Source of the DNA: Perkinsela sp. CCAP 1560/9
Taxonomy: Eukaryota; Protista; Euglenozoa: Kinetoplastea
Direction of reading: 5' to 3'
NCBI GenBank assembly: GCA_965644495.1
Contig: CBFFSA010000006.1
Location: 434,001 to 498,000 of the forward strand
DNA length: 64,000 nt
Part shown: piece by piece, positions 6,510 through 59,354 of the stretch
How the letters are laid out: each line of letters begins with the position of its first letter
How positions within the stretch are numbered: position 1 is the first letter of the stretch
The notes under the pieces: generated by a model
Database searches by the model: none
The model's input: the letters and a program-made list of their open reading frames with translations, nothing else
What the model was told of the DNA's origin: nothing
Made by a program: the position numbers and the translations under genes

Positions 6510-9083
6510 TTGTACGTATCTTTTGTACTTTACTTCCTTGTTGCTACCCTTGACGCAACTGAAAATCAGAGCCTACTATCTGATTCTTCTATTGGTGGCG
6601 GTAATAAGCTAGACGATGAAGTCCTCATGTCTGGACATGACCCAGACCGTCATGCCGCACTCACTTCTTTTAAAAATCAAACGACCCAAAAAAATCAGAA
6701 TCTGTCAAGCAATATTCAAAACAGCACCTCAAAGGGATGCGAATGTGCCTCATGTCACGATCGCGACAACAAGGTTGATTCTCACCCAAGTGACAATGTT
6801 TTGAAAGAAAATGCATCGGCATTTTTGAAGACAAAGCCGTCCTATGATGCAACGGGATCGAACCGCCATAATTACCTCACCGATCCTTCTACGATAAATT
6901 CTTTGGACAATACTGAAAAGAATCAGAAACAGGTTGAAGACTTCTTGGTAATTTTAAGAACAACTGCGGTTGCCCAAGCCCAAAATGTTCTCCGAAAGAG
7001 TGCGCAACAAATGTTAGCACCCACCTCATCTGGGTTCAAAATATGGCGATCTGTCGAAAACTTCACTGCTAACGATACGGATGCGGATTCACGTAGCAAA
7101 TTAAATACACGTAACAATATCCATAATGAGTTAGTCGGAATAACTAATTCAAAGGACTTAAATTTAATGGCTTCCTATCCGGCTTCATTCCTTCTATGTT
7201 ACGCGGATTGGGATCCTACAACTGCGCACTTGTTGGAAACTCTAAATTCATACCTTCGTACTAAGAATGCTGTGAATATAAGTTCGCAAAGACTACCGTG
7301 GCATAGTGGTACTGTTAATCAACAGTCTGTGGCTTTTTCTGCCAATTATTCACTACCTGTCTTTACGTATAATATTTTTAGAGACACAAAATTTCGTCCC
7401 GTTTTGGGTTCTTTAAAAGGTCTGTACTTCATGCAGAGTACCGAACGAGTTCGCGCATTCGCTGGTCAAAATAATGAACGTGACCTTACTGCATTCCTGG
7501 AAAGGATGACTATATATACTTACAAAATGGAACTCTGCGACGACTCGTTAAAAGAAGCTGTATCTTTGTTTGAAACCATTGCAGTTCTATACTCTCCGAG
7601 TAAAAATATCTTAACTTTACCTAACTTCGATGCGGCTTTAGAGGAAATGTCAGAAAAAATACCTTTATTCTACAATTTCACAATTCCACCGAACTTTTTA
7701 TACGGTCCCTTGAAAGAAAATTTTATAGCTCTAACGATATACAGGAAGCCGCAAGCATTTTCGAGCAAACCTTATATGGTAGAAGTCAAGTACTGGACGT
7801 GCGAGAACGCTTTTAGTGGTTTCAAAGACATGAATGGCCGACACATTACTCCGCAGGGCCTACAGCTTGAAGTCCTGCGCTCCTTCGACGATATGCTTTC
7901 TAACTACCCATCCGAACTTCACGTTTTAAATTTTCAAAATGAGTTAGAGCGTACGCGAAACATGGGAAAAAAGATGATTGTTCTTTTCCAAAGAGACTTA
8001 TCGAAAGAGGGTACCCATCTTAAGAAGAGCATTATTTCGTCGAACTGTGTAGAATCCTTGACTACTATTTACGAAGGCCCGTCTGGCCAACCAACCGGAA
8101 GAAAACAAGGACGCGAAAAATATAATTTCTATTATTTTAATGAATTACTGTACCAAAATTTTTCCAATCGGTTGTGCATCGCGAAATATCGGCAATGGCT
8201 CCCTGAAAAGGAGTTTGCAAATCAGGTATACAACGACTTGAAAAATCTGGTTGTGTCTAATTTTTCCACACAAGCGCAAGAGCTCAATATACCAAGAGGT
8301 CTGGATCATTGTGTGTACGTCCTAATTGATCCTAAAGCCTTAAATTATATCCGATTCGTAGAGTTTCCCCAAAACAGAGAAAGTGGAATAGAGGAATTTG
8401 GAGGCATGAAGGATTGCGTACCAAGAACGCAACCACTGATTTCACGTGCACGCCATGTTTCACAAGATAAGACAAGAAAAGCAGATATTTTACACGTCAA
8501 TGACATGTGGTCTTATTTGAATTACTGTTCTTACCAACTTATTGGAGAAGAAATCCTTCGCAAACCAAATGCCATAGCTTATTACAACGTGGGGGAGTGT
8601 GTGCTCTCTTCCCCATTCCAAGCCCTCGTGTTGCTCACTTCCCCAAGTCATGGGCATAGTCTTTGTGCTCAACGAACTGTCGATCAGATTTGTGAGCTCA
8701 AAACATTTTACGATTGGTCCATAAAAATAGGTGAATACGATATCGAATATAATGGCCTGTTTCCACCGTTCAAAAATATAGTGCGAGGATACCCAGAATT
8801 CTTGTATGTGAACAAGACTCACGTAGTTATCTATACTGGAATAGATCGGACTGTACGTGGAGTTTTGCATTTTCTTCGTACGCACATGTATGATGTTTCT
8901 CATATTGCAAATAGTGAGTTAAGCATCGATACACTAATTTCTGGGGCAATTTCTTCAACTAACACACTTCCGTATCATCTCTCTAACGTGTTTAACAGCC
9001 CACGGAATGGCGAGCAGCTTTTTCTAGGTATTCAGCACAACACGCATCATTTATACGGAAATGCGACAGCTGAAATTATTTAA
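6510..9083 (+). CDS. Redox-inactive thioredoxin-fold (PDI-like) protein; start uncertain (TTG 6510 or ATG 6627)
   Basis: Long ORF; FLLCYADWDP and VLLTSPSHGHS...VRGYPEFLY...YTGIDRT resemble Trx a-domains lacking CXXC. Confidence 0.55.
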   Translation: MYVSFVLYFLVATLDATENQSLLSDSSIGGGNKLDDEVLMSGHDPDRHAALTSFKNQTTQKNQNLSSNIQNSTSKGCECASCHDRDNKVDSHPSDNVLKENASAFLKTKPSYDATGSNRHNYLTDPSTINSLDNTEKNQKQVEDFLVILRTTAVAQAQNVLRKSAQQMLAPTSSGFKIWRSVENFTANDTDADSRSKLNTRNNIHNELVGITNSKDLNLMASYPASFLLCYADWDPTTAHLLETLNSYLRTKNAVNISSQRLPWHSGTVNQQSVAFSANYSLPVFTYNIFRDTKFRPVLGSLKGLYFMQSTERVRAFAGQNNERDLTAFLERMTIYTYKMELCDDSLKEAVSLFETIAVLYSPSKNILTLPNFDAALEEMSEKIPLFYNFTIPPNFLYGPLKENFIALTIYRKPQAFSSKPYMVEVKYWTCENAFSGFKDMNGRHITPQGLQLEVLRSFDDMLSNYPSELHVLNFQNELERTRNMGKKMIVLFQRDLSKEGTHLKKSIISSNCVESLTTIYEGPSGQPTGRKQGREKYNFYYFNELLYQNFSNRLCIAKYRQWLPEKEFANQVYNDLKNLVVSNFSTQAQELNIPRGLDHCVYVLIDPKALNYIRFVEFPQNRESGIEEFGGMKDCVPRTQPLISRARHVSQDKTRKADILHVNDMWSYLNYCSYQLIGEEILRKPNAIAYYNVGECVLSSPFQALVLLTSPSHGHSLCAQRTVDQICELKTFYDWSIKIGEYDIEYNGLFPPFKNIVRGYPEFLYVNKTHVVIYTGIDRTVRGVLHFLRTHMYDVSHIANSELSIDTLISGAISSTNTLPYHLSNVFNSPRNGEQLFLGIQHNTHHLYGNATAEII

Positions 9084-9284
9084 AGAAATGGAAACAAAAA
9101 ATAGAGATACTAGACTAGTCTACTGCCTCATTCATCTCTTTGAATCAGTTTGTGTTACCGCGAATCTAAGTTCGATATACTGATGCGTATTTAACATAAT
9201 CTGTATGTAGTAATTTATTGATACAAAGCATCATCTCTACCATACGAGCCACTCTTTAGGCATAATTCCGTAATTTTTACTATA

Positions 9285-10304
9285 ATGATTGCATCGAGCG
9301 CTTTGACTACCCCTCATCGAGATTTCATAAATGACTGTCAAGAGGATGACATTGGCCGATTTCGCGCCACATGCAGCTCAGATGGTACAATAGTCATACA
9401 CCCTCTTGGGGACAACACGAACACAGCGTGCCAAACACTCTTTGGGCACGACGGCCCAGTGTGGAGCATTGCATGGGCACCGATAGCGCTCATATCCAGG
9501 GAACTTTTCCTTGTCTCTGGTGGATACGATGGCCGCGTTATCTTGTGGAAAAATAGCATTCCTGAAACGGGCTTGGGGGCCTTCGAGAAGTGCGATACCG
9601 AAATTTTAAGCGCTGCTGTGAACCGAGTGGCATGGTGTCCTGCAGAGGCGGGATGGCGTCTGGCATGCGCCCTCGTGGATGGCACCATACGCGAGTCCAT
9701 TTGTGAGAACAACAAGTGGGGTATCTTCGCACTTGTGGGAAAGCACGATGCCTCCGTCAGAAGTGTTGCCTGGTGTCCTGTAGTGCCTCGAGCACAGGAA
9801 GTTCCGTGTCCTGTTTTGTGCTCAGGTGGGATGGACGCATGTTTAATGCTGTGGCAAACTACAGGAATTACAGGAAACTACAGGAACTACTGTAATAGAG
9901 GAGAGTGGTTGTGTCTTATTAAGCTACCTCTCGAGAGTCCGATCCATGATATCGGTTGTGCACCGCGTGGTGCCTACGAGCAGTCGATACTTGCCGTTGC
10001 AACACAACAAAAGAGTGTACGAATTTATCATATTAACTTAGAAGATATTTCGATTGCGGATGAGAAAGAAAAGAATTTTTTAGAACAGTTAGCTACACTT
10101 CCTCTGGAAAGTGTACCGTGCGCTGTCTCTTGGTGTCCATTTCAAAATGCATACATGATAGCCGTATCGTTGGACAATGGGAGCGTAGCCGTGTATTGTG
10201 GCACTGAGGATTTCACTAAACTCCATTTTCCGGGGGCATCTATCGTAAAACGTTTACCTACTATGTGGACCGAAACGTCTACCGCGCTTTTGGAAGATCT
10301 ATAA
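9285..10304 (+). CDS. SEC13: Sec13-like WD40 protein (COPII/nuclear pore)
   Basis: ATCSSDGTI, GHDGPVWSIAWAP, SGGYDGRVILWK, VNRVAWCP, SGGMD. Confidence 0.8.
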   Translation: MIASSALTTPHRDFINDCQEDDIGRFRATCSSDGTIVIHPLGDNTNTACQTLFGHDGPVWSIAWAPIALISRELFLVSGGYDGRVILWKNSIPETGLGAFEKCDTEILSAAVNRVAWCPAEAGWRLACALVDGTIRESICENNKWGIFALVGKHDASVRSVAWCPVVPRAQEVPCPVLCSGGMDACLMLWQTTGITGNYRNYCNRGEWLCLIKLPLESPIHDIGCAPRGAYEQSILAVATQQKSVRIYHINLEDISIADEKEKNFLEQLATLPLESVPCAVSWCPFQNAYMIAVSLDNGSVAVYCGTEDFTKLHFPGASIVKRLPTMWTETSTALLEDL

Positions 10305-10457
10305 GGGTAATGTTTCGAAACATTTCATGCATTCATGTTCAGATGTTTACAAAAAAAATGGAATTACGTTATCCCTATCGCATTGCCTACCTACGGGACA
10401 TAGTAGATACCCTGTGACATAGGGTATCGAACCATACGTAACCCTTTTACATTTCAC

Positions 10458-11438
10458 ATGTTCCCTATAAAGTTGTCCTCGTCTACTTTCTCCTCCCATG
10501 TACTTCCCCTAATGCCCGCCGTCGACACCCACGTTGGCACCCTCTCCGCGGCCGCCCTACTCTGGACCCCCATCCTCCTCGGCACCCTCGCACCGGCCAC
10601 CTGGCACCCCACCCCCGCGACCGCCTTCCCCCTCCCCTACGCCCTCCCCCTCCTCCCTCTCCTCCTCCTGCTCACCGCCTACCTCGCACGACGTCCCTCC
10701 GGGGAGGGCCTCATGTCCCTCTCCTTTCTTCTGGGTCTATGCACCCAGTGTTACCTCCACCCCACCGCGGAGTACCCCGCCCCTCCCCTTGGGGGGGTGA
10801 ACGTCCCCCCCCGTGCCCCCCCCTCCCCCTCTTTTTCTTTTTTCTCCCCCTCTCTCACGAACGCCCTCCATGCCGTCTCCCCGCTCTACACACTCCTCTC
10901 CGAGCACGGCATCGCGGCCTGGGCCGCCACCGCCGCCCAGCACCCCCGCCGGGTGCTGTGGCTGCTCGCCTGCGTGGGCTTCGGCCTCACCAGCGCCTGG
11001 TTCTGTAAGCGAGCGGACAGGGCCCGGGGTAGGGGGCGCCGGGAGGGGGGGGCCTGGCGCCCACGGTACCCCCTCACGGAGCGGCTCTACCTCGTGCTGC
11101 CGTTTGCGCTGGGGGAGGGTGTGGGGTTGTTCTGGGCGCGCGGCCGCCGGGCGACCGTGGAGGTGCTGGTGGCTATTTTTTTAGGTGAGGCCACGGTGGG
11201 GTTGTTTTTGATGGGGTACCATGCGTTGCGGCACGCCGGGGTGTATGGGGGTGACTTGGTGGGGTGTGCGCGGACGATGCTGCATGCGAGTTTGTGGAAT
11301 CTGTGTGGGGCGGGGTGTGTGGTGGCGCTGAGCTTGCATTTTGTGATACACCCGTTGCTGCACCAGTTGTTTCATAGAAACGTGTTGATTAGCTCGTTTG
11401 GTATTGCATGTGAGCTTATTTTTTATGACATGTTTTGA
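10458..11438 (+). CDS. Multi-pass membrane protein of unknown function
   Basis: 326 aa ATG-initiated ORF with many hydrophobic segments; lies in a C-to-G skew domain. Confidence 0.65.
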   Translation: MFPIKLSSSTFSSHVLPLMPAVDTHVGTLSAAALLWTPILLGTLAPATWHPTPATAFPLPYALPLLPLLLLLTAYLARRPSGEGLMSLSFLLGLCTQCYLHPTAEYPAPPLGGVNVPPRAPPSPSFSFFSPSLTNALHAVSPLYTLLSEHGIAAWAATAAQHPRRVLWLLACVGFGLTSAWFCKRADRARGRGRREGGAWRPRYPLTERLYLVLPFALGEGVGLFWARGRRATVEVLVAIFLGEATVGLFLMGYHALRHAGVYGGDLVGCARTMLHASLWNLCGAGCVVALSLHFVIHPLLHQLFHRNVLISSFGIACELIFYDMF

Positions 11439-11641
11439 GAGCAGCGGGTGTGGATGGCGTATAGAGGGGGGTGTCGGAAACGGGAAAGGTTGAGAATAGA
11501 ACCCCTTGTATCTTGTATTCTTGTTATCCATAGTCTCCCATGCATGAATGGACGATCCCATGAGGATTGGCCCGCAACATGAAAAAAAAGATTTGAATTA
11601 TTCTTATTCTTCTTTTTAAGCCAATCCACCGTCACCCACCC

Positions 11642-13051
11642 ATGTACCCCCCCTCTCCTCTACCCCTCCTCCTCCTCCTCCTCCTCACCCCCCACCTCCT
11701 CACCCTCCCCACCTCAACCGACCCTCCCCCACCCCACCTCCTCTACAACCCCTTCCCCCTCCCCTGGCCCCCTTCCCCACCACCAAAAACCCACAACCCC
11801 TTCTACCCCCCCACCCGAGCCTGCCCCCACATGTGGGACGGCCCCACCTGCTCCCTCTGCCCCGTTCCCTACACCGGTCTCCACTGCAACACCTGCCGTC
11901 TCCCCCCCTCCCCTACCCTCCCCTACGCCCCCCAACCCTACCCCTACTGCGCCCCCGGCCCCGGGGTCCCCTCCGGGCTGGCCCGGGCGAACCACCTCGA
12001 GGCCACGGCGCGGGTCAACGCGGGGGAGGGGGGGGGTGCGCCCCGGTGTAACCGCACCGAGGTGTGTGGGGACCGGGCGGAGGGGGTGTACTACTGTGGG
12101 GAGCGGCAGGCGTGTGTGTGTGAGGGGTGCACGCAGATGTGGGAGCAGGGGGAGGGGGAGGGGGAGGGGGAGGGGGAGGGGGAGGGGGAGGGGGAGGGGG
12201 AGGGGGAGGGGGAGGGGGAGGGGGAGGGGGGAAGTGGGGGGAGAGTGTGGTGGGGGGTTGAGGGGGGGGGACGGGGGAAGGGGGGAGAGGGAGAGGGGGG
12301 AGAGGGACAGGGGGTTCAGGGGAAGGGGGGGAAGGGTGTTCAGGGGGGGGAGGGACAGGGGGTTCAGGGGAAGGGTGTTCAGGGGAAGGGTGTTCAGGGG
12401 GGGGAGGGACAGGGGGTTCGGGGGAAAGGACAGGGGGTACAGGGACAGGGCGTTCAGGGGAGGGGACAGGGGGGAGAGGGAGTGGGGGTTCAGGGGAGGG
12501 GACAGGAGGGAGAGGGAGTGGGGGTTCAGGGGGAGGGTAAGGGGGAACCGTGGCAGGGACAGGGGGGAGGAGGAGGGGGAGGACGACGCTGTGATGTTTG
12601 TCCATGGCCGTACGCCGGGGAACGGTGTAACCGGTGTGCGGTGCAGGGGAGGGTTTTTCCGTTTTGTGCGGAGGAGAGTTGGGTGGAGTGGGTGGTGGGG
12701 AAGGTGTGGAGTGGGGGGAGGGCGATCCCGGAGAGGTTGCGGTGTGGGACCGTGGAGAGGGAGTGTTATGGGAACGCGAGGAGGGTGTTTTATCATCCCG
12801 GGTTGGGGCATTGTGTGGGGGAGTGTGTGGAGGGGTGGACGGGGAGTCGATGTGAGTACTGTCCAGTGCCGTTTACCGGGGTGAAGTGTGATGGGTGTAT
12901 GGACCCGACACTGCGTTTTCCGGCTTGTTATGAGAGTGAGGAGGAGAATCGAAGGGCGCGACAGCTTTATGCATATCGCAGAACTGCGGTGATTTACCCA
13001 GTAGGGTATTTGTCTGAGGAGGAGGATTCGAGAGGAGAACGAGCCTTCTAG
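11642..13051 (+). CDS. Secreted/surface Cys-rich protein with three laminin/EGF-like repeats and a Gly-rich insertion
   Basis: Leu-rich signal peptide; repeats CPHMWDGPTCSLCPVPYTGLHCNTC, CTQMWE..RCDVCPWPYAGERCNRC, CVEGWTGSRCEYCPVPFTGVKCDGC. Confidence 0.7.
   Translation: MYPPSPLPLLLLLLLTPHLLTLPTSTDPPPPHLLYNPFPLPWPPSPPPKTHNPFYPPTRACPHMWDGPTCSLCPVPYTGLHCNTCRLPPSPTLPYAPQPYPYCAPGPGVPSGLARANHLEATARVNAGEGGGAPRCNRTEVCGDRAEGVYYCGERQACVCEGCTQMWEQGEGEGEGEGEGEGEGEGEGEGEGEGEGGSGGRVWWGVEGGGRGKGGEGEGGEGQGVQGKGGKGVQGGEGQGVQGKGVQGKGVQGGEGQGVRGKGQGVQGQGVQGRGQGGEGVGVQGRGQEGEGVGVQGEGKGEPWQGQGGGGGGGRRCDVCPWPYAGERCNRCAVQGRVFPFCAEESWVEWVVGKVWSGGRAIPERLRCGTVERECYGNARRVFYHPGLGHCVGECVEGWTGSRCEYCPVPFTGVKCDGCMDPTLRFPACYESEEENRRARQLYAYRRTAVIYPVGYLSEEEDSRGERAF
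12149..12226 (+). repeat. (GGGGAG)13 hexamer microsatellite encoding (GE)13
   Basis: Read directly from sequence. Confidence 0.95.
12290..12545 (+). repeat. Degenerate G-rich minisatellite (GGGACAGGGGGTTCAGGGG-like units) encoding GQGVQG repeats
   Basis: Recurrent GTTCAGGGG and GGACAGGGG units. Confidence 0.85.
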
Positions 13052-13230
13052 GTTTGAGCAAGTGGTTGAGCAACGAGTGTTCATAGATTCCGTAGATTGT
13101 AGGTTATTAGTTAGTTTATATTTGCATATGTGTCATCGTATTAAGGGTACAATAAGGAGTTGCGTGTGATGCTTTTTAAACCGCATAAACGAAACTTAAA
13201 TTTGCAATATTCCCAGTACAAGTGTCCTTT

Positions 13231-14034
13231 ATGGATCGCAACTCATCCACCCCGTCACTCAGTGTTGTGATTCCGACCTATCGGGAATGCGAGAACCTTG
13301 AGCCCCTTATTGTTCGTCTATTTGCCTCTTTCCCAGAGAACAGTATCAATACTCCAAAAATTGAAGTCATCGTTGTGGATGACAACAGCCCAGATGGAAC
13401 AGTTGCTGTAATGGAGCAATTGCAAGAACGTTTTCCTGCTGTTCGGCTTATAGTCCGCACGCACGAACGTGGATTAAGTAGTGCAGTACTCCGTGGGTTT
13501 GAGCACACTACGGGGGACATTCTACTTGTTATGGATGCCGACCTGCAGCATCCACCCGAGTTTGTCAAGCACCTATACCGGCCGTTCCTCGAGGACGAAA
13601 ATATTCAGTTCGTTGTGGGAACACGGGAAATTCCACCAAACTCCTCTTGGTCAAACACACGCAAGCTTATCTCAACGTTTGCGACTAGTCTCAGTTATCC
13701 TCTTACGTGTGGACAAATGGCGGATCCGATGACTGGATTTTTCGCCCTACGTCGTTCGAAGTATAATTCGTATCGTGAAGCAGTCAGTGCGGTTGGATAC
13801 AAGATTGCCCTGGAACTGTACGTGAAATGCCATTGTACCCCAAAAGAGACTTCCGAAGTCACATTTCCCTTTGGTGTGCGTCGGGCTGGGGAGAGTAAGC
13901 TATCCGCACGTGTCGTATTTCAGTATCTGCAGCATCTGGCGCAGCTCTACTTATATTCCATGGGGCCACTGTTCGCATTACTTCTGTTGATCATTCTGCT
14001 GATGATTTCCTTGTACGATCTCCAAAAAAAATAG
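13231..14034 (+). CDS. DPM1: Dolichol-phosphate mannosyltransferase (GT2) with C-terminal membrane anchor
   Basis: SVVIPTYRE, VVDDNSPDGT, RGLSSAV, MDADLQHPPE, DPMTGFF, GYKIALEL, RRAGESKL; hydrophobic C-terminus as in yeast/trypanosome-type DPM1. Confidence 0.95.
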   Translation: MDRNSSTPSLSVVIPTYRECENLEPLIVRLFASFPENSINTPKIEVIVVDDNSPDGTVAVMEQLQERFPAVRLIVRTHERGLSSAVLRGFEHTTGDILLVMDADLQHPPEFVKHLYRPFLEDENIQFVVGTREIPPNSSWSNTRKLISTFATSLSYPLTCGQMADPMTGFFALRRSKYNSYREAVSAVGYKIALELYVKCHCTPKETSEVTFPFGVRRAGESKLSARVVFQYLQHLAQLYLYSMGPLFALLLLIILLMISLYDLQKK

Positions 14035-14292
14035 ACTCATCCTTTTATTGGTCTATTTCATGGCAATTTAATCGACACTATTCATTTAGTGTCTAAATTA
14101 GACAAATTAGTTTCGACGAACGACTTCGTTTGACGAATTCTTTTCTGACACATAATTTTATAGAGATGTCCGTGTGCGCATGGACTGAATGATAATGCGT
14201 TGTGAAAAAAAAATTCACAGAATATTCTTTCAAACGTATTCTTCTCTTCCTCTCTTACACGCCCCCATGCTCCCACCCCCCACCCCCTCCCC

Positions 14293-15669
14293 ATGACCCG
14301 ACCTTCCTCCCCCACCACCACCCCACCCCCACCTGAAATCGACTTCTCCGAGACCTGGATCCGTCCCCACACCATCACCGTCGCCCTCCTCGGGGCCGCC
14401 GGGATCTGTCTCCTCCACTACCTCACCCACCTCCCCGACGACCCCCCGTTCCACGCCTCCCACTACGGCGCCGCCCTCCTGGCCTCGGTCGCCGTCTTCC
14501 TGGTCTTCTCCTGCGTCCATCTCCCGGACTCCATGCTTACCCGACCCCACCCCGCGGTCTGGCGCCTTCTCCTCGGGGTCGCGGTGCTCTATCTCATGTT
14601 TATGGTTTTCCTGCTGTTCCTGAATCTCCAGGACGCCCGTCAGGTGTTTGGGTTTCTCGACCCGATGCTGCTGTCCCCCCCAGAGGAGAGGCTCTACGCG
14701 GAGGACTGCAGGCTGTTCCCCGTGGAGGACCCGTACCGGGCGCTACGTGCGTTGCTGGATGAGTTTTTCGTGGCCCACGCGCTGGGGTACTGGGTGAAGA
14801 TGATTGTGCTGCGGGATGGGTGGTTGGTGTTTGCGGTAAGTCTGGGGTTTGAGGTGCTGGAGTGTACGTTTCAGTACTGGTTGCCGAATTTTAAGGAGTG
14901 TTGGTGGGATCACCTGCTGTTGGATGTTTTTGGGTGCAACGCGTTGGGGATGGTGCTGGGATATTACACGTTGAGGTATTTAAACGCGAGGGAGTATAAC
15001 TGGGTGAAGCTGGGTGAGGTCAAGGGGTTGGGGAAAAAAGCAAGGCGTATTGCGCTGCAGTTTACCCCACGTTCGTGGCATATCCAGCAGTGGGCGTTCT
15101 TTAACAGCCCCGCACATACCTTGGATGTTACTTTTGTTCTTTTTGTGTTCCTACTCCAGGAGTCAAACTGTTTCTTCGCAAAGCATATACTGTGGATGCC
15201 AAGTACGCATCCCTTGGTCGTCGGTCGGGTCGTTATGTGGGGATTTCTTGCTCTTCCCTCGATTCGGGAGTTTTATTGCTACCGTCGTGAAAGCACGGGA
15301 AAGAAAAACCGACGACTAGGAACCACCGCCTGGGTGTGTAGTCTGGCGCTCTTTTTTGAGACACTGGTTATTCTGAAATACGCCCGACAAGGAAACTACT
15401 TTGCCGAAAACCCTTTGCCTCATCATGTCAAATTCATGTGGTCCGTGGCGCTTGTGTCATGGATTATTTGGTTTGTTGTACGGTATTGGAGGTTTTGGCA
15501 GTGTGGTACCCATAGCATAACACGGCGCGTTTGTTGTTGGATTCTATATGGGATTCCTTTTGTGGCATTGGCTATGCTGTGCGCTATTGCAACACCCGGG
15601 ATTGAGCCTATTTCGGATCCCTGTAAAATATTTGTGGGATATCTTTCCGGTGTACCCGTCTTACATTGA
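14293..15669 (+). CDS. PSS: Base-exchange phosphatidylserine synthase (PTDSS/PSS2-like)
   Basis: RPHTIT, RPHPAVWR, YAEDC, LPNFKECWWDHLLLDVFGCN. Confidence 0.95.
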   Translation: MTRPSSPTTTPPPPEIDFSETWIRPHTITVALLGAAGICLLHYLTHLPDDPPFHASHYGAALLASVAVFLVFSCVHLPDSMLTRPHPAVWRLLLGVAVLYLMFMVFLLFLNLQDARQVFGFLDPMLLSPPEERLYAEDCRLFPVEDPYRALRALLDEFFVAHALGYWVKMIVLRDGWLVFAVSLGFEVLECTFQYWLPNFKECWWDHLLLDVFGCNALGMVLGYYTLRYLNAREYNWVKLGEVKGLGKKARRIALQFTPRSWHIQQWAFFNSPAHTLDVTFVLFVFLLQESNCFFAKHILWMPSTHPLVVGRVVMWGFLALPSIREFYCYRRESTGKKNRRLGTTAWVCSLALFFETLVILKYARQGNYFAENPLPHHVKFMWSVALVSWIIWFVVRYWRFWQCGTHSITRRVCCWILYGIPFVALAMLCAIATPGIEPISDPCKIFVGYLSGVPVLH

Positions 15670-15843
15670 GATGAACAATAAACTGTTTGTACGATCCACC
15701 TAGCTTGATGTGGAAAATCTCTGATGTTGATTGGAGTATCGTTTCGACCTATAGTAGTATTATTCGAGACTTTCTGATTTTTGGGCTTAAAAATAGTCAT
15801 ATTTCTGTGAGGGCATTTTCTTATCTTTTCTTTACATCATTTC

Positions 15844-16509
15844 ATGTCGGCACCTGCAGGAGGCAGTGACGTCGCTGCCACTTTTAAACTAATTCTTGTC
15901 GGAGATGGAAGTACCGGGAAGACAACCTTTGTGAAACGGCACAAGACTGGTGAGTTTGAAAAACGCTACATCGCTACCGTTGGCGTTGATGTTCATCCTT
16001 TGACGTTTCATACTAATCGTGGGGTTATTTGCTTCAACGTCTGGGACACTGCTGGCCAAGAGCGCTTTGGGGGACTCCGCGATGGGTACTACATTGGGGG
16101 AAACTGTGCCATCATTATGTTCGACGTTACCTCGCGTTCAACGTATAAGAACGTACCGAACTGGCACCGGGACATCGTTCGTGTGTGTGATCCAATTCCT
16201 ATGGTTCTGGTAGGCAACAAAGTGGACTGTTTGGAACGTCAGGTCAAGGCAAAACAGATTACTTTCCACCGCAAGAAAAATTTGCAGTACTACGATGTCA
16301 GCGCGAAAAGCAACTATAACTTTGAAAAGCCGTTCTTATGGCTGGCGAAGCGACTGGCGAATGACCCGAATCTGACTTTTGTGGAGGCAAGTGCGTTGAA
16401 GCCCCCAATGATATCCATGGATGCCGCGATGGTGCAAGGTATGGAGCGTGACCTCCAGGAGGCCTCAGCTATGCCTCTACCCGACGATGATGATGACGGA
16501 ACTTTTTAA
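15844..16509 (+). CDS. RAN: GTP-binding nuclear protein Ran
   Basis: [38 protein letters not shown], acidic DDDDD tail. Confidence 0.98.
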
Positions 16510-16901
16510 AGTATGGTCCTGTGATGTCCAATGCGAAAGTTTGCTTCGATTCGTTCATAATTTAATTATGGTTACAAATAGGGAATGGCACTTTAGTGGG
16601 CTGTGAGCATTCAGAATCTTATGTGGCACAGAGCAAGAACACCACTATATCATCACTTTACGGATAAGATCGAGTTTTAATCAACGGATTATCATACGCG
16701 TGAAAGAGAGAACCCGAAGTACAATACTTTAGTATCAGAAATAGGCTATAACTTTATATAATTTTTGTTCTTGGGTTAGAAGATTCTCCTGGTTTTCTTT
16801 TTTGATTACTATTTAAGATTTTAATTTTTAGATTCTCTACTTAGACTAGACATCTTATCTTGTCAAGAGTTATTATTGCCGCGTTTCGAACATGTGAATG
16901 A

Positions 16902-17747
16902 ATGCTGCGAAACACTCAAACCACAGGGTTATTGCGGCGCATTACGTATACATTAGTCCAAGTTCCAGTTACGCAACCTCTTCTTACAGCGGATGAACTT
17001 AGCCTTAAGCTTGGGGAAACTCTACAAGTTGAACTCCAGAGAAATCGATATACCAGCTTTTTGCAGCTCTTACGTTCTCATCCTAAGCTTTTTGCCATTG
17101 AGGGGGAAAACCGCGTTCGCACACGAGTCCCTGCTTCCGTACTTTTTGATCTTCATGATGCAATCAAAGAAGCAGCACGCTTTGGGTGGTCCGGTACCAC
17201 AATGTCTCCTGGCATTGGAGAGATTTGCGGCTTTCTACACCCTGCCACAACAGAGTTTTTGCACCGCGAGCGGATTATATCGTTTCGTATGTTTCTGGAG
17301 GAGTACATGTTTCCGTGGGTGGTCCTCGTCATGGGATCCACGCGATGTCGTTGGATCGAATCTGAACGAACGATTGCGAAAATTCGAGCGGCTCCGGAGG
17401 GCACAATAGTGGAACACCGTGAGGTCAGTGTGTCCAAGCATAATACAAGTAATTTGGTCGGCGCATCGCTACGTGACGCGACGGATGCAAGCTCGTTTTG
17501 GGACTCCAACCCTCAATTTTGGACAGAGGCACAAAAACAAGGTGTTTTGGATGCAGGGAATGTACTTTGGGAGCATCTGCCCTCGGATGGCACATCTCGT
17601 GATGTGATTGACGTTATGCACGAGTCCCGGTTGAACCTGCGGCACGACCGGTACGCTCAACTTGGCCGCAAGTTGTATGTCTTTCCTCATCCAAAGATTG
17701 GGTGTTCTGCTGCACCTGGGAAGCGCTTCAAAATATGGAGACGGTGA
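16902..17747 (+). CDS. Hypothetical protein, possibly mitochondrial
   Basis: 281 aa ORF in gene-sized slot; MLR..LLRR start resembles a kinetoplastid mitochondrial presequence. Confidence 0.6.
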   Translation: MLRNTQTTGLLRRITYTLVQVPVTQPLLTADELSLKLGETLQVELQRNRYTSFLQLLRSHPKLFAIEGENRVRTRVPASVLFDLHDAIKEAARFGWSGTTMSPGIGEICGFLHPATTEFLHRERIISFRMFLEEYMFPWVVLVMGSTRCRWIESERTIAKIRAAPEGTIVEHREVSVSKHNTSNLVGASLRDATDASSFWDSNPQFWTEAQKQGVLDAGNVLWEHLPSDGTSRDVIDVMHESRLNLRHDRYAQLGRKLYVFPHPKIGCSAAPGKRFKIWRR

Positions 17748-18358
17748 AATACAGTGACGAACGACACTTGTCTGAAAGACCAGAATTTGAAAGAGCTTGG
17801 TTGCTGCACGCTGCATAGGATATCGGCGCTCCGCGCCAGAGATCGTGTGTATGGTGTTATATTATATCTAAGATAAGTATAAGTGCAAGATAATCTTACA
17901 CTTCATTCTTGGTGTCCACGTGACCTTGGCTCCAGCCATTTCGGAAAAAACGTACCAATGAACAGTACCACGAATGATGATGACTGGTGACATCAGCAGT
18001 TTTTCCTGACTTTTTTCCGTTCTGTTCTGTACTTGCCCTGCGATCCTATGTACATGTGCTTATCCAAATATGTATGTAAAGGACATGTTTATAATTGGGG
18101 CGTCAAATTTAGAGAAATCGCAAATAAATTATATTTGAAAATCATTTATGTCTTCAATGAACTTTGCGAAGCTCAGAACGAAACTCTTTACAAGCTAGTA
18201 AGTACATACCATAGCATTCCTCAATTTATAGGTGATGGCACATGGAGCTACACGATGTGTACAAAAACGTAGCAAGTACGTTCTAGTTTCCTTATGTACG
18301 AGCTCAGACATGACCTTTCAGTGGGGAGGGTAAGATCTGTTCGCACAAAAAGGTGGTA

Positions 18359-19648
18359 ATGCTGGTGACTCAAACGGGAGATGCTACGGACCTTCTCAGC
18401 AGTGCATTGGCCAACCAAACACAAGAAACCTCGGAAATCTACGCTGTACCCCATTACACGGCTCCACTGCGCGATTCTCGATTTATTGAGACCTCCGAGA
18501 TTCTAGGTCAGGGCGCATTTGGGCGTGTCGTAAAAGGAATCCGGAGGGACACAGGTGAGAATGTAGCGATTAAAGCGATCCGCAAGCCCGACCCACTCTC
18601 TCTCACGTATTTGTCGCGTAAGAGAGCCTTGCAGACAGAGATCGCGATTTCTACAAAAGTAACTCATCATAGTGTGGTTGAGTATATCGGAGTGTATCAG
18701 GACGAGTCTTTCATCTACTTTGTCATGGAGTATTGTAGCAAAAAAGACTTGGAGTCGTATGTCCTGAACCATGGGCTGGAAGAGATTGAAGCCATTGCGC
18801 CACGGATCGTCGCAGGGCTGGTATCCGCTTTAAACTACTTACAAAATATCCAGGTGATACATGGAGACATTAAGCCTTCGAACATTCTCCTTACCTCTAA
18901 TTTTCATGTCAAACTCACAGACTTCGGTTCTGCGCAAAACCGGTGCGGTGAGGTCGACGTGAACTTCGCGGGCACGGCAGAATACCTCAGTCCGGAAGTT
19001 ATCATGAAGTCAACCCCTACTGTGGCGTCGGACTTGTGGGCAGTAGGATGCGTTCTGTACTTTCTATACGTCGGGACCTCACCCTTTTCCCGTGGTACAG
19101 CGTACAAATCCATGTGCAGTGTGAAGAACGCGGAATTTACATTTCCTCCGTACTTTCCGTACAACGCTCGTGATCTTGTTCAAAGATGTCTGCAGAAATG
19201 CCCGAGCGACCGCTTTGGCATGGACCGTAGAAATAAGTTGGAAGCATTTAAAAAGCACCCTTACTTTGACTCCGGATTGTGGTGGGACACTGATTCGTTC
19301 CCATCGACAACTGCTTCGGTAGATTGCACAGCTCATATCCAGCGTTACCTCAAATGTGAGGAGCATGCGATATATTTTTCTATTGTACAGAAAAGAGGGA
19401 ACTACGGCTCGTACGTCAGACGTTTGCTTCTTCTTTCGGATCGACCACGTCTTTCGTACATAGACTTACAGTCCGGTGTCTCTAAGGAACTTCTTTGGAA
19501 CGCGGATCTTTGTGCCACAGTTCTAAATAGAGATGAATTTTTGGTCAACACGTCTTCACGTGAATACCACTTTGTGGACGGGAGACATAAAGCCCCTTTC
19601 TGGTGCGGTAAAATAAACTCCTTTTTGAAAAAAATGCATTTTCGTTAG
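18359..19648 (+). CDS. PDK1: PDK1-like AGC kinase with C-terminal PH domain
   Basis: GQGAFG, VAIK, HGDIKPSN, DFG, FAGTAEYLSPE, DLWAVGC; C-terminal QKRG..RRLLLLSDRPRLSYID..W matches PDK1-type PH domain. Confidence 0.85.
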   Translation: MLVTQTGDATDLLSSALANQTQETSEIYAVPHYTAPLRDSRFIETSEILGQGAFGRVVKGIRRDTGENVAIKAIRKPDPLSLTYLSRKRALQTEIAISTKVTHHSVVEYIGVYQDESFIYFVMEYCSKKDLESYVLNHGLEEIEAIAPRIVAGLVSALNYLQNIQVIHGDIKPSNILLTSNFHVKLTDFGSAQNRCGEVDVNFAGTAEYLSPEVIMKSTPTVASDLWAVGCVLYFLYVGTSPFSRGTAYKSMCSVKNAEFTFPPYFPYNARDLVQRCLQKCPSDRFGMDRRNKLEAFKKHPYFDSGLWWDTDSFPSTTASVDCTAHIQRYLKCEEHAIYFSIVQKRGNYGSYVRRLLLLSDRPRLSYIDLQSGVSKELLWNADLCATVLNRDEFLVNTSSREYHFVDGRHKAPFWCGKINSFLKKMHFR

Positions 19649-24376: not shown

Positions 24377-25849
24377 ATGTCCGATAACAATCAAGAGAGC
24401 ACTTTTTGGCGAAATACCGAATCCTGGCAAGCGAAGGCTGTCAACCCGCGAGAAAATAGTCCGCCGCGATCACCGCAACGTACTCCTATGAGTTCCCCAA
24501 GTCACATGTCTCCCAACAAGCCGAACTTTGAGGCCACTGCGGCAACACGAGCCGAACCACAGCTACCAACTCCGTCCAACGTCGCCGACACCCGGGTCAA
24601 TCCCTCAGACTTTCCCAAAGACGACACGACTGTCACGGTGCAGGATGGGACGAAACCTTCCAAGAGCGAGGAGGAGCTTGCCAAGTACACGCATGACCCC
24701 ATCGAGTACACGGACTCCGCTTGGCATTACATGGACATGATGGTTGTGACCATTCCTATTTTTATGGGATATGCCACACTGGCCCTCATGCAGCGGAATG
24801 TGCGCGACCGTCTCGGCATTGAAAACGGTACCCACGAGGCACGCATTTTTAACGCTGGTGTCAGTTTTCTGTACCTTGGAAACCTCCTCTTTCGCCTGTT
24901 GCACAATTTCGTGTTTACGTTCCTCCGTCCCCGACACCGTGTGTACCTGAGCTACTACGGCATCATGCTCGCCATGAACCTCCTCGGATGGCTCGTGTTT
25001 GTGGGCAACGTGAAGCATCTCTCGATTGTGTTCATCAGCTATCTACTTGGCGGGATAAGTATCGGGACGTTTGAGTCCAATGTGATCTCCGTGTTGACTC
25101 CCTACGGTCACCGTGCGAAGTCGTGGGCGGTCACTGGGATTCCGATTGGGTTCAACATGATTGCCATAGGTGGGTTTATGCTGATTTACTTCTGCGATCA
25201 TTACATGTGCAAGTTTGCGATCTACATGACCGTGTTCACCGCCAATGTTGTCGGTGCGACGTACTACCGCTTCAAAGTCAAGGATCTCCCTTCAGGCTCT
25301 AGCAATGACGACGTGTACAAGTTCCTTTCCGATTTGAAAAAATGGCGTGAGTGGTTGGTCCCCATCTGGGCCTACTGTGCTGCGTTGACGTTGGACAAAT
25401 TTTGTCTTGGACTGTTCGGATCCATTCATCTCTACATGTACACCGACGACCATCTTCCCGTGTGGCCTGGAAGCAGCGCGACCATTCCGAAAAACCTCTT
25501 CTACTGTCTCTATTCGTTCTGTTGCTTGATGGGGGATTCCGGTTCTCGAAAGATTGCATACATTGACCGTGCGCGACAACCGATGTACTTCCTGCTCATG
25601 TCTCTCGTAGGTGCCATTCTGGTGCTTAGCAAGGTGTTGATCTTCTCGTTGATTGGCATTATTCTGATTTTCTTTGCTAACGGGTCGATTTACGCCCACA
25701 CGACGCGACGAATCGATCAGCGTGTGTCGAAGCGCTTCAACCTCATTGCGCTCAGCATTTGGCTGTTTATCGGGGATCTTGGTTCCTACACGGGGTCCAA
25801 CCTGAATTCCCATATTCCTCGCTGGATCAGCCATTTGCACCGCTGGTAA
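24377..25849 (+). CDS. CLN3/battenin-like (MFS-type) multi-pass transporter
   Basis: About 10-11 hydrophobic segments after a disordered N-terminus; family assignment from recall only. Confidence 0.6.
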   Translation: MSDNNQESTFWRNTESWQAKAVNPRENSPPRSPQRTPMSSPSHMSPNKPNFEATAATRAEPQLPTPSNVADTRVNPSDFPKDDTTVTVQDGTKPSKSEEELAKYTHDPIEYTDSAWHYMDMMVVTIPIFMGYATLALMQRNVRDRLGIENGTHEARIFNAGVSFLYLGNLLFRLLHNFVFTFLRPRHRVYLSYYGIMLAMNLLGWLVFVGNVKHLSIVFISYLLGGISIGTFESNVISVLTPYGHRAKSWAVTGIPIGFNMIAIGGFMLIYFCDHYMCKFAIYMTVFTANVVGATYYRFKVKDLPSGSSNDDVYKFLSDLKKWREWLVPIWAYCAALTLDKFCLGLFGSIHLYMYTDDHLPVWPGSSATIPKNLFYCLYSFCCLMGDSGSRKIAYIDRARQPMYFLLMSLVGAILVLSKVLIFSLIGIILIFFANGSIYAHTTRRIDQRVSKRFNLIALSIWLFIGDLGSYTGSNLNSHIPRWISHLHRW

Positions 25850-28489: not shown

Positions 28490-28692
28490 GAAGGTCTCCA
28501 CGGCTCGGGAATATGATGCGTCTGTCACGAAGCTATTATTAAATCAGAAAGCTCAAACAGCGTGTCAGAAAATTTCTTTCCGGGTGTTTTGTAATACACA
28601 ACATTGAAAAATTGGATTACTATGATCGTTGGAAACGGAATTTTAGAACATGTTAAGGCGAAAGTACGTGTAGATGTATGTACTAAATCCAA

Positions 28693-45898: not shown

Positions 45899-47149
45899 AT
45901 GCCGAATCTCCATGTATCTCTGTACAGAACTGTGCTCAAGAAAGCGAACTCAATTTTGCGTGCATACAACGGAAACTTACACTGGGCGACAAAATCCATC
46001 TTTGGTAATGCCATTCATCCTCTCTATTGGAACACCATAGGCTCCACCCCACGTGACATCATACGACACTATTTCACTAAAGGCCTCCCCCCCGGTCTCC
46101 CTCCCCGTACCCGCTCCCTCATTGTCTTCGAACTCCTCAAACGCATGAACCTCGCCGTCGCGGACCCCTCCTCCGAGCGCAGTCTCCTTCACCCCATCTC
46201 CCTTCGTCGTGGCGACGCCCCCCCCTTCCACGTCACCAGCTACCAGGAAGACGCCCTCCCCCCACCCCCTCGACTCACCCTCCGTGGCGACCCCTTCTGG
46301 GCCATCCAACTCTGCTGCCCCTCCGTGTGCTTCCCCTGGAAGGAGGAGTTCACCTGGGTCAATCCCCCCCACCCCCTCCCCCCCTCTTCCCCCCCCTCCT
46401 CCCCCAAACTCCTCTCCACCTCAACGATCACCACCACCGCGAAAGTCGAGGTCGCGGTCACCACTCGACTCATCTGCGCCCATAAGGAAACCCACAACCA
46501 CGTGTTTGAGTACCGCATCAAAATCACCAACACGGGGAGCCCCGGGCGCGACCCCACCGTCCAGGTCCTCTCCCGGCACTGGTACTTCCTGGACTGGCAC
46601 TGCGAGACGCTGGTGGAGGTGGTGGGGAAAGGGGTGCTGGGGCAGTTCCCGTGGCTCCCCCCCGGCGAGAGCCACACCTACACCTCCGGGACGGATCTAA
46701 GCTCCCGGCATGGCGTGATGAAGGGGCTGTTGCAGGTGGCACGGTTTGCGTGCCCTCCCCCGCGTGGGGGAGGGGGGGGGACAGCCGTGGAGGAGGAGGA
46801 GGGGGGGATACCGCCTGAGGGGGATGTCGTGGAGGCGTTGGAAAGGGAGCTTACAGCAAAGGCGTCTGTGGTGCAAGGGGGTGTGAAAGGGGGGGAACAA
46901 GAGAAGGGGGAAACGGGAAACAAGGGGGTGGATGATAAAAAGCGGGAAAAAAGGGAGAGAGGTAAAGAAAAAAGTCATGGTGTAAAACCCGACGTGTCGA
47001 AGTGTTCTGAAAGTGTATGCTCGGACGTTCCTGTATCGAAGAATGAGAAAAAAGTTGAAGCACCTAGCGATTCGCAACCTTCTCAACCTCCGGAAACGTT
47101 CATTGATATGATTGACGTTTTCGTTGCACCGACTTTATTTTCCGGTTAA
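45899..47149 (+). CDS. ApaG-domain protein
   Basis: FEYRIKITN, VQVLSRHW, EVVGKGVLGQFPWLPPGESHTYTSG, GVMKG. Confidence 0.88.
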   Translation: MPNLHVSLYRTVLKKANSILRAYNGNLHWATKSIFGNAIHPLYWNTIGSTPRDIIRHYFTKGLPPGLPPRTRSLIVFELLKRMNLAVADPSSERSLLHPISLRRGDAPPFHVTSYQEDALPPPPRLTLRGDPFWAIQLCCPSVCFPWKEEFTWVNPPHPLPPSSPPSSPKLLSTSTITTTAKVEVAVTTRLICAHKETHNHVFEYRIKITNTGSPGRDPTVQVLSRHWYFLDWHCETLVEVVGKGVLGQFPWLPPGESHTYTSGTDLSSRHGVMKGLLQVARFACPPPRGGGGGTAVEEEEGGIPPEGDVVEALERELTAKASVVQGGVKGGEQEKGETGNKGVDDKKREKRERGKEKSHGVKPDVSKCSESVCSDVPVSKNEKKVEAPSDSQPSQPPETFIDMIDVFVAPTLFSG

Positions 47150-55036: not shown

Positions 55037-57208
55037 ATGACTTCATCTGACGCAGGTATTTACGATGAATCAAGTGAGATCGCCTCTTTGCCTGCGAGAT
55101 TTATCATTAAGTCCAAGAGAAGAGGACAATCCATATCTTGCAAGCGTCACGTTTTAGTCAAGCCTGAAGGGGGCGGACCTTTACATGCGCTTTTACGTGG
55201 CGCAAGGAAGGGGGAAACACTCCAGATAGATACTTTACCGGAATGCTTCTTACAGGAATCTTCGTCACCCGATTGTTCCAATGAAGGTGTGGATGCAGAA
55301 AATAAAGCATTCGAAGTGGAAGTCTGCGATAGGTTTACGCAGTATGACGTAAGTGCAGGTAATAGCGATTTTTTCGTTAAAGAAATATTATCGTCCAGCA
55401 AAGACGTTGATTTATTTACCCCAGATTTTGAAAGTAAGGTAGCCGTGGACATTAATGAGGTGATAGATCTCGATTCCTTTTTTCAGCAATTAAGCGAGCA
55501 CGAAAACAATTTTCAAGAAGTGGAGATTGGAGATGGACGACTTTCACGGCACTTTGAAGACGCAATTTGCTCAATGAAATCAAACGAAGTGGCTTTATTT
55601 ATGTTTCCTTCTTTGCTTTCCGATGCAAAAGAAAATTCGCAACCTCCATCCGAAAAATACTACCGCTTTGAGCTTCGTTCTCATTCAAGAGTGTGTGCCT
55701 TACATTTAGATGATGCAGAAAATATTAGGCACGCTGAGCAAAGAAAAATTGAAGGCAATACTTTATTGAAGAAAGATAATTTGCCTTTGGCTGAGAAAAA
55801 ATATCTCCGAGGCCTTGAATTTGTCGCTCAAATAGGCAAAAAAGGTTTAAATTTCTTGTTGAAGAAACTTTCTACCACAATATCTTTGTATAATAATCTT
55901 TCTTTGGTCTACCTGCGTCAACATAATTGGCACAAAGTAGTCGATGCCAGTTCAAAATCAATAGCTCTAAATTCCAAACCGAACGAAAACACCAAGGCAT
56001 ACCTCCGAAGAGGGGTCGCATACCGTTTTCTTATAGAATTCACCAACTCTAGACGGGACTTCGAAATGATTCTTTCATGTGATCCGAATGACACCGAGGC
56101 ATTGCATCAAATGAAGACTTTACAGGAAACGTTGCACAATCATGAGACGTATGAGAAGCGTGTATATCGAAAAGCCTTTGCGAAAGGCTTTGATTACGAC
56201 GATGTACGCTATCAAGGATATGTCTGCTCTTGGAGTAGATCAAAGGGTTGTGGAAGAATTCGTCACGTTGAGACTAAAAACGAGTATTTTGTACATTTTA
56301 CTGATGTACGTACCTGCCGTGATCCCGCTCAGCTCTATGTCGGCGAGCGGCTGGAATTTCAACCAATAAAAACAGAAGAAAGACTGAGAGCAGGAGATGT
56401 CACGTTGCCTGGTGGTATTCGAATTCCGAAAGTAGAGGAATTTTCCAAAGAGATGGATCCGCAGAAACAAGTGGAACAGAGCATCAAGAAAGCCCTTTGG
56501 GAAGCTGAGCTCGAAAAGAATACTTCAGAATTTGGCCTGGGGTCGGTTTCCTCCGAATCAAATAGACACTTTACATATGGAACATGCAAAGAGTGGAACC
56601 TAGATCGAGGATTTGGTGTTATCACTAATGATAAAATTGAATCTACAGAGTATTTCGTTCATTGTAGAGATATTTTGAGTTGTCTAAAACCTCGTAAGGC
56701 TTTATTTGTTGGCGAAAAGGTGCGTTTTGAAGTAGACGAAACGGAAATTGGACGACGCCGAAAACGTGCCATTCGGGTTACTTCGCCTAATGGGCAAGAA
56801 TGTAGCGGTATCGAATGTCTTTCACAAGAAGAGCAAGAAAGATCGATTCAAGGAGGACGAAAACTCCAGAAGCCTTCTCGATCGAATGAAGAAACAGGTC
56901 TACTACAGCGAAGACATACGGGAAAGTGTATAAAATGGATTTACGAACGGGGCTTCGGTTTCGTAGAGTCGTACGACACTGAAGTGGAGTATTTTGTGCA
57001 CGCAACTTGCTTGGAAAAATGCAATGGAAAAATCAAAGCTTTGCGCATAGACGAAGAAGTTGAATTTGATGTAGAAACAAAAAATGGAAGACAGCGCGCC
57101 ACAGCCGTAACCGCCATTGGGGGATCTCCTGTTTCAGGATTACAAGAAATTCCAGATGCAGATGCTCCTATGGAAGCTAAAATTGTTCAAAATGAAAGTA
57201 TTGAGTGA
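55037..57208 (+). CDS. FKBP-like/TPR protein fused to three cold-shock domains
   Basis: FKBP-like EIGDG..FEDAICSMK; TPR RKIEGN..KKYLRG, KAYLRRG; three CSDs with G(C/F)G + YFVH motifs. Confidence 0.88.
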   Translation: MTSSDAGIYDESSEIASLPARFIIKSKRRGQSISCKRHVLVKPEGGGPLHALLRGARKGETLQIDTLPECFLQESSSPDCSNEGVDAENKAFEVEVCDRFTQYDVSAGNSDFFVKEILSSSKDVDLFTPDFESKVAVDINEVIDLDSFFQQLSEHENNFQEVEIGDGRLSRHFEDAICSMKSNEVALFMFPSLLSDAKENSQPPSEKYYRFELRSHSRVCALHLDDAENIRHAEQRKIEGNTLLKKDNLPLAEKKYLRGLEFVAQIGKKGLNFLLKKLSTTISLYNNLSLVYLRQHNWHKVVDASSKSIALNSKPNENTKAYLRRGVAYRFLIEFTNSRRDFEMILSCDPNDTEALHQMKTLQETLHNHETYEKRVYRKAFAKGFDYDDVRYQGYVCSWSRSKGCGRIRHVETKNEYFVHFTDVRTCRDPAQLYVGERLEFQPIKTEERLRAGDVTLPGGIRIPKVEEFSKEMDPQKQVEQSIKKALWEAELEKNTSEFGLGSVSSESNRHFTYGTCKEWNLDRGFGVITNDKIESTEYFVHCRDILSCLKPRKALFVGEKVRFEVDETEIGRRRKRAIRVTSPNGQECSGIECLSQEEQERSIQGGRKLQKPSRSNEETGLLQRRHTGKCIKWIYERGFGFVESYDTEVEYFVHATCLEKCNGKIKALRIDEEVEFDVETKNGRQRATAVTAIGGSPVSGLQEIPDADAPMEAKIVQNESIE

Positions 57209-57544
57209 AAGTCTACTTTTAATCTTTTTATTCTGTACTTTCTTAGATATCTTTTTTCAACACGTACAATACTATAACTCTTCTTCTGCAATGCGTGTAT
57301 TATAGTTCTATCTATTCTTGTTTGTAGTTTCGTTTTCTCCTAATATTTGTTTTCTGCTACGTGAATTTCTTTTCAAAAATACGACACACGTATCATGCAG
57401 TGTGCAGCTCAGACGTTATCTCTCCTTTTGCTCTTAGCAATCACTGGAAATTAATGTATCCATAACTCCAGTAAGATACAGTAAGCATAAAATACGAATT
57501 TGTACAAATAATACATATCCCTCCTTTTCTGTTTTTGAACTGTC

Positions 57545-58801: not shown

Positions 58802-59354
58802 GTTTTGTCCGTAAATACTGCAAAATCATATTCCACTACAATGTGACTGCAAAGATACTACATTGTAAGGATAGAGCTGATTATTTGCATTCTGTTGCGA
58901 GTTTTTTTCTAGGTTCTAAACGGTCGTCAAATTCTACAAGATTTGGCCAGAGCATATCAACGCATTAAAGGTATTATTCGATCTAAATGCTTCTAAGCAT
59001 TTATTTGTTTCATTGTTCAGTTCAATGTCCAGGGTGATATGAGATAAAAAATCTTACGCTGTATATGCATGCAGGTACAAATGCATCATGTATAAATGTA
59101 TTTATAAGCTTGTGTGACGCATACAAATAATACAGTAGGAAGTAGTCCATGTACGTTTGTCCATATAGTACATGGATGTATATGGATAAATGCGAGCATG
59201 TTATACTCGAAATTCTGGCCATGTGTATGACCGCAATGGTGTACTTCTAACATGTGTTCTAACATGCACCCTTCTAGCACGTGTTCTATATACATCCTAC
59301 ATCTGCATTAATGTACTTATGTATGCGTGTACCTACGCGGTCCAATAGTGTTGC

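Follow-up and report, generated by a model that had tools for sequence, protein, structure and literature searches.

The window analysed here, a stretch of 64,000 base pairs (C6:434001-498000) from an assembly of 21 Mb in 110 contigs, carries four islands in which a C-rich arm is followed by a G-rich arm on the plus strand, at a GC content of 61-72% against approximately 43% in the surroundings. A preliminary description of this sequence had reported four such domains, and all four are recovered, with the fitted edges listed in Table 1. Island 1 covers the open reading frame (ORF) 10458-11438, which encodes a hydrophobic protein of 326 amino acids without a Pfam match, entirely, together with both edges of its untranslated regions (UTRs). 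The host of Island 2, ORF 11642-13051, encodes a hydrophobic N-terminus and three EGF-like cysteine motifs, and its Gly-rich expansion at approximately 12140-12590 extends the G arm of the island. In a comparison restricted to the available loci of relatives, neither of these two uncharacterised ORFs found a match. At the third codon positions of the phosphatidylserine synthase (PSS) gene, Island 3 reaches a C fraction of 0.66 on the left and a G fraction of 0.58 on the right, with background values beyond, while the corresponding values for Island 4 are 0.69 and 0.57. The glycosyltransferase gene between Islands 2 and 3 serves as an internal control. The composite patch further downstream possibly represents two faint islands.

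Table 1. Islands and associated features in the window (positions are those of the window; GC3, GC content at third codon positions)
Feature	Position	Strand	Remarks
Island 1	10432..11499	.	C arm then G arm, centre ~10950-11005
Island 2	11621..13171	.	strongest island, score 0.52; centre ~12005-12020
Island 3	14227..15052	.	5' UTR and first 255 codons of PSS (14293-15669); centre ~14580-14680
Island 4	46011..46982	.	within ApaG-domain gene 45899-47149; centre ~46580-46605
GT2 glycosyltransferase (DPM1-like)	13231..14034	+	between Islands 2 and 3, near-background composition
Weak or composite GC-rich patch	24400..25330	.	gene GC3 0.63; short alternating C and G segments; below the 0.15 threshold

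Detailed statistics were obtained from a larger region, C6:234001-498000 (264 kb), which is without any strand switch and in which all genes are intronless and located on the plus strand. With island centres called by an annotation-free switch score of at least 0.15, 25 islands are observed, compared to a mean of 0.55 and a maximum of 2 after shuffling of codons within genes, which excludes chance as the source of the recurrence. They are hosted by 24 of the 135 ORFs, or about one gene in six, among which are genes for an RNA export factor, bystin, a proteasome-type ATPase, PRPP synthetase, a class II tRNA synthetase and methionine aminopeptidase. The polarity is from C to G: a hidden Markov model without an imposed order of C and G states yields 25 transitions from C to G against 6 from G to C, and the peaks of the latter kind are located at the flanks or junctions of islands. 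In the whole genome, C-runs followed by G-runs outnumber the reverse arrangement by 301 to 62 at a spacing of 250-280 bp and by 15 to 0 at 450-480 bp, the 15 being spread over seven contigs; these counts are of overlapping matches and not of independent sites. The matches occur in gene clusters of both strands, as judged by the orientation of kinase genes. Simple extrapolation gives approximately 2,000 islands for the genome, although their density is patchy and the assembly appears to contain duplicated haplotigs. Three pairs of kinase matches have near-identical length and score (C13:232089 and C2:1345762, C23:46879 and C56:9798, C11:4758 and C21:81306), which suggests duplicated haplotigs and a haploid genome that may be smaller than 21 Mb.

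The source organism is a prokinetoplastid on the Perkinsela branch with a polycistronic gene organisation, as shown by its placement in a PSS tree and its intronless genes on a single strand. The PSS of the window is 53% identical to that of Perkinsela sp. CCAP 1560/4; in the tree it pairs with the sequence of ENA contig L027 (100/98, with a long branch and a similar order of genes), this pair is sister to a Perkinsela clade, and a Papus-type sequence falls outside. A flagellar-rod search was blank, as was its control, so that it carries no information. In contigs from Perkinsela-type relatives (L023-L027), either DPM1 and PSS or PSS alone opens a divergent unit at a strand switch, whereas the neighbours in the window are all on the plus strand; in L027, a WD40 gene precedes PSS, and the strand switch is found directly upstream of it.

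A comparison with orthologues, as proposed in the preliminary description, finds the switch lacking in relatives. Third-position composition is flat in four PSS orthologues, the orthologues of the ApaG-domain protein (Perkinsela-type) and of methionine aminopeptidase have no C-to-G switch, and no island was found in approximately 106 kb from five loci of relatives. The same islands are present in a second public assembly of the same organism, which differs by single-nucleotide polymorphisms (SNPs); an assembly artefact is very unlikely, as both this second assembly and the intact reading frames and conserved residues argue against it. Horizontal transfer is rejected on account of the second assembly and the intact orthologous residues. 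The feature is real, genome-wide, lineage-specific and extreme.

The contig of the second assembly shows 141 SNPs over 49 kb with respect to the window. Islands 1-3 lie inside an 11-kb stretch free of SNPs (7307-18404), perhaps because it is homozygous or because the phase switches between the assemblies, and 3-17 SNPs per kb are found at 21-28 kb. A second, nearly SNP-free stretch at approximately 55200-64000 is without islands. The second assembly also departs from the window at 28625 (L031:15265-20831), with approximately 7.9 kb of extra sequence that carries an ORF for a Tc1/mariner-type DDE transposase and an ORF for a reverse transcriptase of 1517 amino acids; this is an insertion polymorphism.

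Which bases change is best seen at fourfold degenerate sites, at which the background composition is A 0.27, C 0.20, G 0.21 and T 0.32. On the left arm C rises to 0.68-0.70, and on the right arm G rises to 0.65-0.69. At the centre both are raised, and the fourfold GC content is 0.86 compared to 0.41 in the background. Stratified by codon family, the odds ratios on the left arm are 8.3 for C over T, 9.9 for C over A and 7.0 for C over G, and those on the right arm are 7.9 for G over A, 10.2 for G over T and 4 for G over C. At twofold sites, C over T is 4.7 and G over A 0.91 on the left, while G over A is 4.5 and C over T 0.64 on the right. Together, these ratios point to a single gaining base per strand, with transitions and transversions affected alike. 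A and T are not significantly shifted against each other on either arm (A over T being 1.27 where G gains). The drive is nearly independent of neighbouring bases, and G is equally frequent after T and after G. The islands have a scale of approximately 1.2 kb, and beyond 900 bp from the centre there is no difference between left and right (p 0.17-0.67), hence no skew on the scale of a replicon.

The preliminary description had mentioned G-runs with more T, and had reasoned from deamination of single-stranded DNA. The first point does not hold at fourfold sites, where the G arm has a T fraction of 0.04-0.11 as against 0.315 in the background; T exceeds C only at twofold pyrimidine sites. Deamination is rejected in any geometry, since T falls, G is gained from A, T and C alike, and the change from T to G, a transversion, is as strong as that from A to G. 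As deamination cannot give the pattern, the argument built on it neither favours origins or R-loops nor excludes breaks. A gain of one base from all three others, regardless of context, could also be the mark of a different recurring lesion or stall (turnover of base J or hydroxymethyluracil, uracil excision, topoisomerase breaks or fork convergence), the gaps being filled by a translesion polymerase of the REV1 type that inserts deoxycytidine monophosphate (dCMP), which leads to G on the outward strand. Insertion of dCMP opposite abasic sites does give one base from all others, and the genome has two JBP-type dioxygenases, two genes of the uracil-DNA glycosylase family and three Y-family polymerases. 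No link joins these genes to the islands, however, and the three Y-family polymerases may or may not include a REV1. The idea also requires a several-fold local excess of mutation, none of which is apparent in the small SNP sample, and leaves the fixed centre unexplained, so I regard it as improbable. The two uracil-DNA glycosylase family genes are located 12 kb apart (C1:2165731 and 2177994).

The two arms are equal in mirror image. C over T on the left (8.3) corresponds to G over A on the right (7.9), C over A on the left (9.9) to G over T on the right (10.2), and the twofold ratios agree likewise (4.7 and 4.5). The process is therefore indifferent to which way transcription runs, and the earlier proposal of a point-centred, strand-symmetric process agrees with arms that are mirror-equal around fixed centres. 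Its proposal of transcription start points fares worse. Internal bidirectional starts of RNA polymerase II, or R-loop seeds, would make the non-template strand G-rich on each side, a polarity that is compatible with divergent transcription; G-rich elements are found on the coding strand of start regions in Trypanosoma brucei (PMC5579346), and the Perkinsela-type PSS orthologues do lie at a divergent strand switch. Against this, 25 islands occur in a single plus-strand run of at least 264 kb, with sense and antisense arms of the same strength, whereas initiation in T. brucei is biased 4:1 towards sense and its elements are rich in both G and T (PMC5579346), T being depleted here. The strand-switch regions of the relatives are without such islands as well. 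Transcription starts thus seem a quite remote explanation.

The skew is a property of the nucleic acid in unrelated host genes, as had been suspected. Silent sites carry it, and it spills into UTRs and other non-coding DNA, with a C fraction of 0.38-0.48 on the left and a G fraction of 0.44-0.53 on the right against a background of 0.19. A cause at the protein level is rejected on the same grounds, and also because one motif is coded both ways: the EGF-like cysteine motif in ORF 11642-13051 uses C-ending codons at 14 of 16 positions at 11849, whereas in the G arm, at 12590 and 12851, the counts are 4 and 2 of 16 and most codons end in G or T. Amino acids follow the bases, with 15% Pro on C arms and 13% Gly on G arms compared to about 5% elsewhere. 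The conserved residues of PSS are kept in its two arms (26 of 28 and 56 of 59), as in the orthologues.

Selection for outward-facing G-quadruplex (G4) arrays, or for a long fold-back in mRNA or DNA, was also put forward. The two halves of an island are able to pair, and 118 of 121 G4 motifs do face outward, 3 being in the opposite arrangement. G4 prediction and folding against shuffles gave no excess, however: the motifs are at the level of local shuffles (51 vs. 46 and 67 vs. 70), as are G-runs (460 vs. 485 expected) and C-runs (558 vs. 567), short stems are not enriched, and the gain in folding over synonymous shuffles is only 2.9 +/- 1.7 kcal/mol out of approximately 250. Moreover, G shows no preference for a position after G over one after T, and a fold-back would work equally well as G followed by C. 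Inverted repeats are rejected, with matches of only 70-89% that lie mostly between low-complexity runs and are absent from Island 3, and so is mirror complementarity (mean z 0.65). A selected structure is largely refuted, and I give it hardly any weight.

The islands are thus a neutral overprint that reflects neither protein nor structure. Each records the accumulated effect of a substitution drive, neutral and lineage-specific, that acts no farther than approximately 0.6-0.9 kb from a fixed point inside a gene. All bases tend to G on the strand that runs outward from the centre (5' to 3'), and all tend to C on the inward strand, the two one-sided zones overlapping at the centre, where GC reaches 86% of fourfold sites. 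Protein selection keeps the conserved residues in place, whereas the drive rewrites silent sites, variable residues and the UTR close by. In practice, island genes are shortened or overlooked by the public gene caller.

The centres are located non-randomly. All 25 lie within ORFs (the coding fraction being 73%), at a GC content of 53-72%; 18 of them fall 250-600 bp away from whichever gene end is nearer, where 8.2 are expected (p = 7e-5), and none is more than 1 kb from a gene end (3.9 expected). The 5' and 3' ends of genes are about equally used. The scoring windows of 400 bp may in part account for the shortage of centres very near gene ends. Mean spacing is approximately 10 kb, complete islands being as close as 0.8-1.3 kb to each other, and the density is uneven, with 20 islands in the 130 kb of C6:234001-364000 and 5 in the 134 kb of C6:364001-498000. 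A faint trend with the sign seen in the islands is present in non-host genes too (p = 0.03); weak islands may thus be common. No shared motif was found at the centres: the best 7-mer, a C4G3 word, occurs at 14 of 25 centres against 5 expected, which is under the 95% maximum of the null.

Some observations on the surroundings of the islands can be added. In C6:234-498 kb, GC3 outside islands peaks (0.48) where island density is greatest, and intergenic regions beside host genes are shorter (median 270-294 bp) than those elsewhere (362 bp, p = 0.009), the latter median being possibly inflated by missed short ORFs. An interspersed repeat of approximately 290 bp is present at C1:454311, 851000, 1966420 and 2016691; a C-run and a G-run stand at its two ends, and it contains inverted copies internally. 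Its first two copies sit between kinase genes of opposite orientation, possibly close to strand switches. C6:234-498 kb has neither of two probe words taken from this repeat.

The location and spacing of the centres bear on the possibility that they are fixed replication origins, in which the first few hundred bases of the leading (outward) strand would be made by a polymerase that over-inserts G or is poorly proofread, or would be repaired differently. The polarity is that of the usual upward jump in G over C at origins, and the way in which the two zones overlap at the centre recalls leading strands primed across an origin. The spacing is near the median distances of 15-21 kb between origins in T. 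brucei (PMC13179062), and initiation is mutagenic in Leishmania (PMC12890776). On the other hand, the origins mapped in kinetoplastids lie between genes or in AT-rich DNA (PMC13179062, PMC12890776), those of T. brucei being intergenic with an AT-rich centre and the initiation zones of Leishmania AT-rich, whereas the islands are intragenic and GC-rich. G4s on the plus strand lie upstream of T. brucei origins (PMC13179062), the opposite polarity, as 118 motifs here have the reverse arrangement and 3 have that one. The skew ends within 900 bp and is not accompanied by a TA skew, complete islands lie as little as 0.8-1.3 kb apart, and a rise in fourfold GC from 41% to approximately 80% is not usual at origins. 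Origins thus agree with the islands in density and in the sign of the jump; the intragenic location, the G4 polarity and the missing replicon-scale skew do not fit them, and on balance I place them second, as possible but rather unlikely.

The best reading, which I offer as a tentative one, is that the centres are stable break or recombination hotspots with strand-biased conversion or repair synthesis. The centres would be long-lived sites of double-strand breaks or recombination, at which the resected 3' tails (the top strand on the left and the bottom strand on the right) would be the strands that gain C, and the strands made by repair synthesis those that gain G. The drive could be biased conversion in heteroduplex DNA, in which an ordinary GC bias is multiplied by a strand-linked bias, C of the invading strand escaping correction; over-insertion of G during repair synthesis would be an equivalent route. 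In yeast, C:C mismatches are poorly repaired, a weakness that gives the strand-linked bias the right sign. A GC factor of approximately 3 times a skew factor of approximately 3 gives the observed odds ratios, although this arithmetic is post hoc. The width of the islands, the GC peak at their centre, the equality of the mirrored arms and the like treatment of transversions all suit a process centred on breaks; the bias from weak to strong base pairs is as strong in transversions as in transitions, as in biased conversion and unlike deamination. Also in favour are the near independence of context, the lack of any excess of runs, G4s, stems, folding or a shared motif, the patchy distribution along the contig and the SNPs that separate the second assembly. 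This genome encodes a SPO11-type protein and five MutS-family genes, Perkinsela retains SPO11, DMC1 and HOP1 (PMC5601477), and in a mouse reporter mismatches at a break were resolved strand-asymmetrically, although the type of mismatch mattered little there (PMC9001825).

Several points weigh against hotspots. Breaks or recombination at the centres are an inference, and the SPO11-type protein and five MutS-family loci of this genome, which belong to meiotic break formation and mismatch repair, are not specific evidence. Classical GC-biased gene conversion (gBGC) is strand-symmetric; here G has no advantage on the left (twofold G over A of 0.91), and on the right C is at a disadvantage at twofold sites (C over T of 0.64), so an extra strand bias must be postulated. 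Plain symmetric gBGC is rejected, a joint gain of C and G being confined to positions less than 100 bp from the centre. Hotspots that are independent of PRDM9 are usually located in nucleosome-poor promoter DNA, whereas the centres avoid intergenic DNA, both in their confinement to ORFs and in their distance from gene ends. Island 4 contains 7 SNPs against 4.3 expected and Islands 1-3 contain none, a sample too small to have any power.

The islands could also stem from an undescribed DNA transaction, to which I would give some but limited credence. It would act at fixed sites inside genes, numbering on the order of a thousand or more; at each of them a repair or synthesis step would fix C on the incoming strand and G on the outgoing one whatever the context, with enough force to alter codons and variable amino acids in one gene out of six. 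If the centres are break or recombination hotspots, they would offer a strand-resolved record of heteroduplex repair that can be read from one genome, and evidence that a prokinetoplastid has recombined over the long term. If, instead, the centres are origins, these could be mapped from sequence alone and would be distinct from all kinetoplastid origin types mapped. In both cases codons and variable residues are being rewritten by a neutral force.

The literature searched, the coverage of which was incomplete, yielded no account of islands of this kind. The islands are related to the signatures of hotspots and of origins, but fail a defining test of each. Replication skews in bacteria, yeast and vertebrates share the upward jump in G over C at the centre; these skews span the replicon, are usually accompanied by a TA skew and do not raise the GC content, whereas the skew of an island ends within 900 bp. 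Peaks of gBGC at stable hotspots, such as the GC peaks of canids, resemble the islands in their kilobase scale, their central GC peak, their weak-to-strong transitions and transversions and their spill into amino acids, but the islands are strand-polar, with C gaining on one side and G on the other, and are situated in gene bodies. The log odds of the islands, approximately 2.1-2.3, are of similar size to the strength of human hotspots (B of approximately 2.45, PMC13712754). Origins of T. brucei (PMC13179062) show a point-centred, strand-symmetric asymmetry of G within a few hundred bases at a similar density, from which the islands differ in being intragenic and GC-rich, with G on the plus strand downstream. 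Finally, the GT-rich transcription start regions of T. brucei (PMC5579346) have in common with the islands an excess of G over C on the strand that leaves the centre, but these promoters mark the starts of polycistrons and are T-rich and sense-biased, while the islands are internal, T-poor and symmetric.

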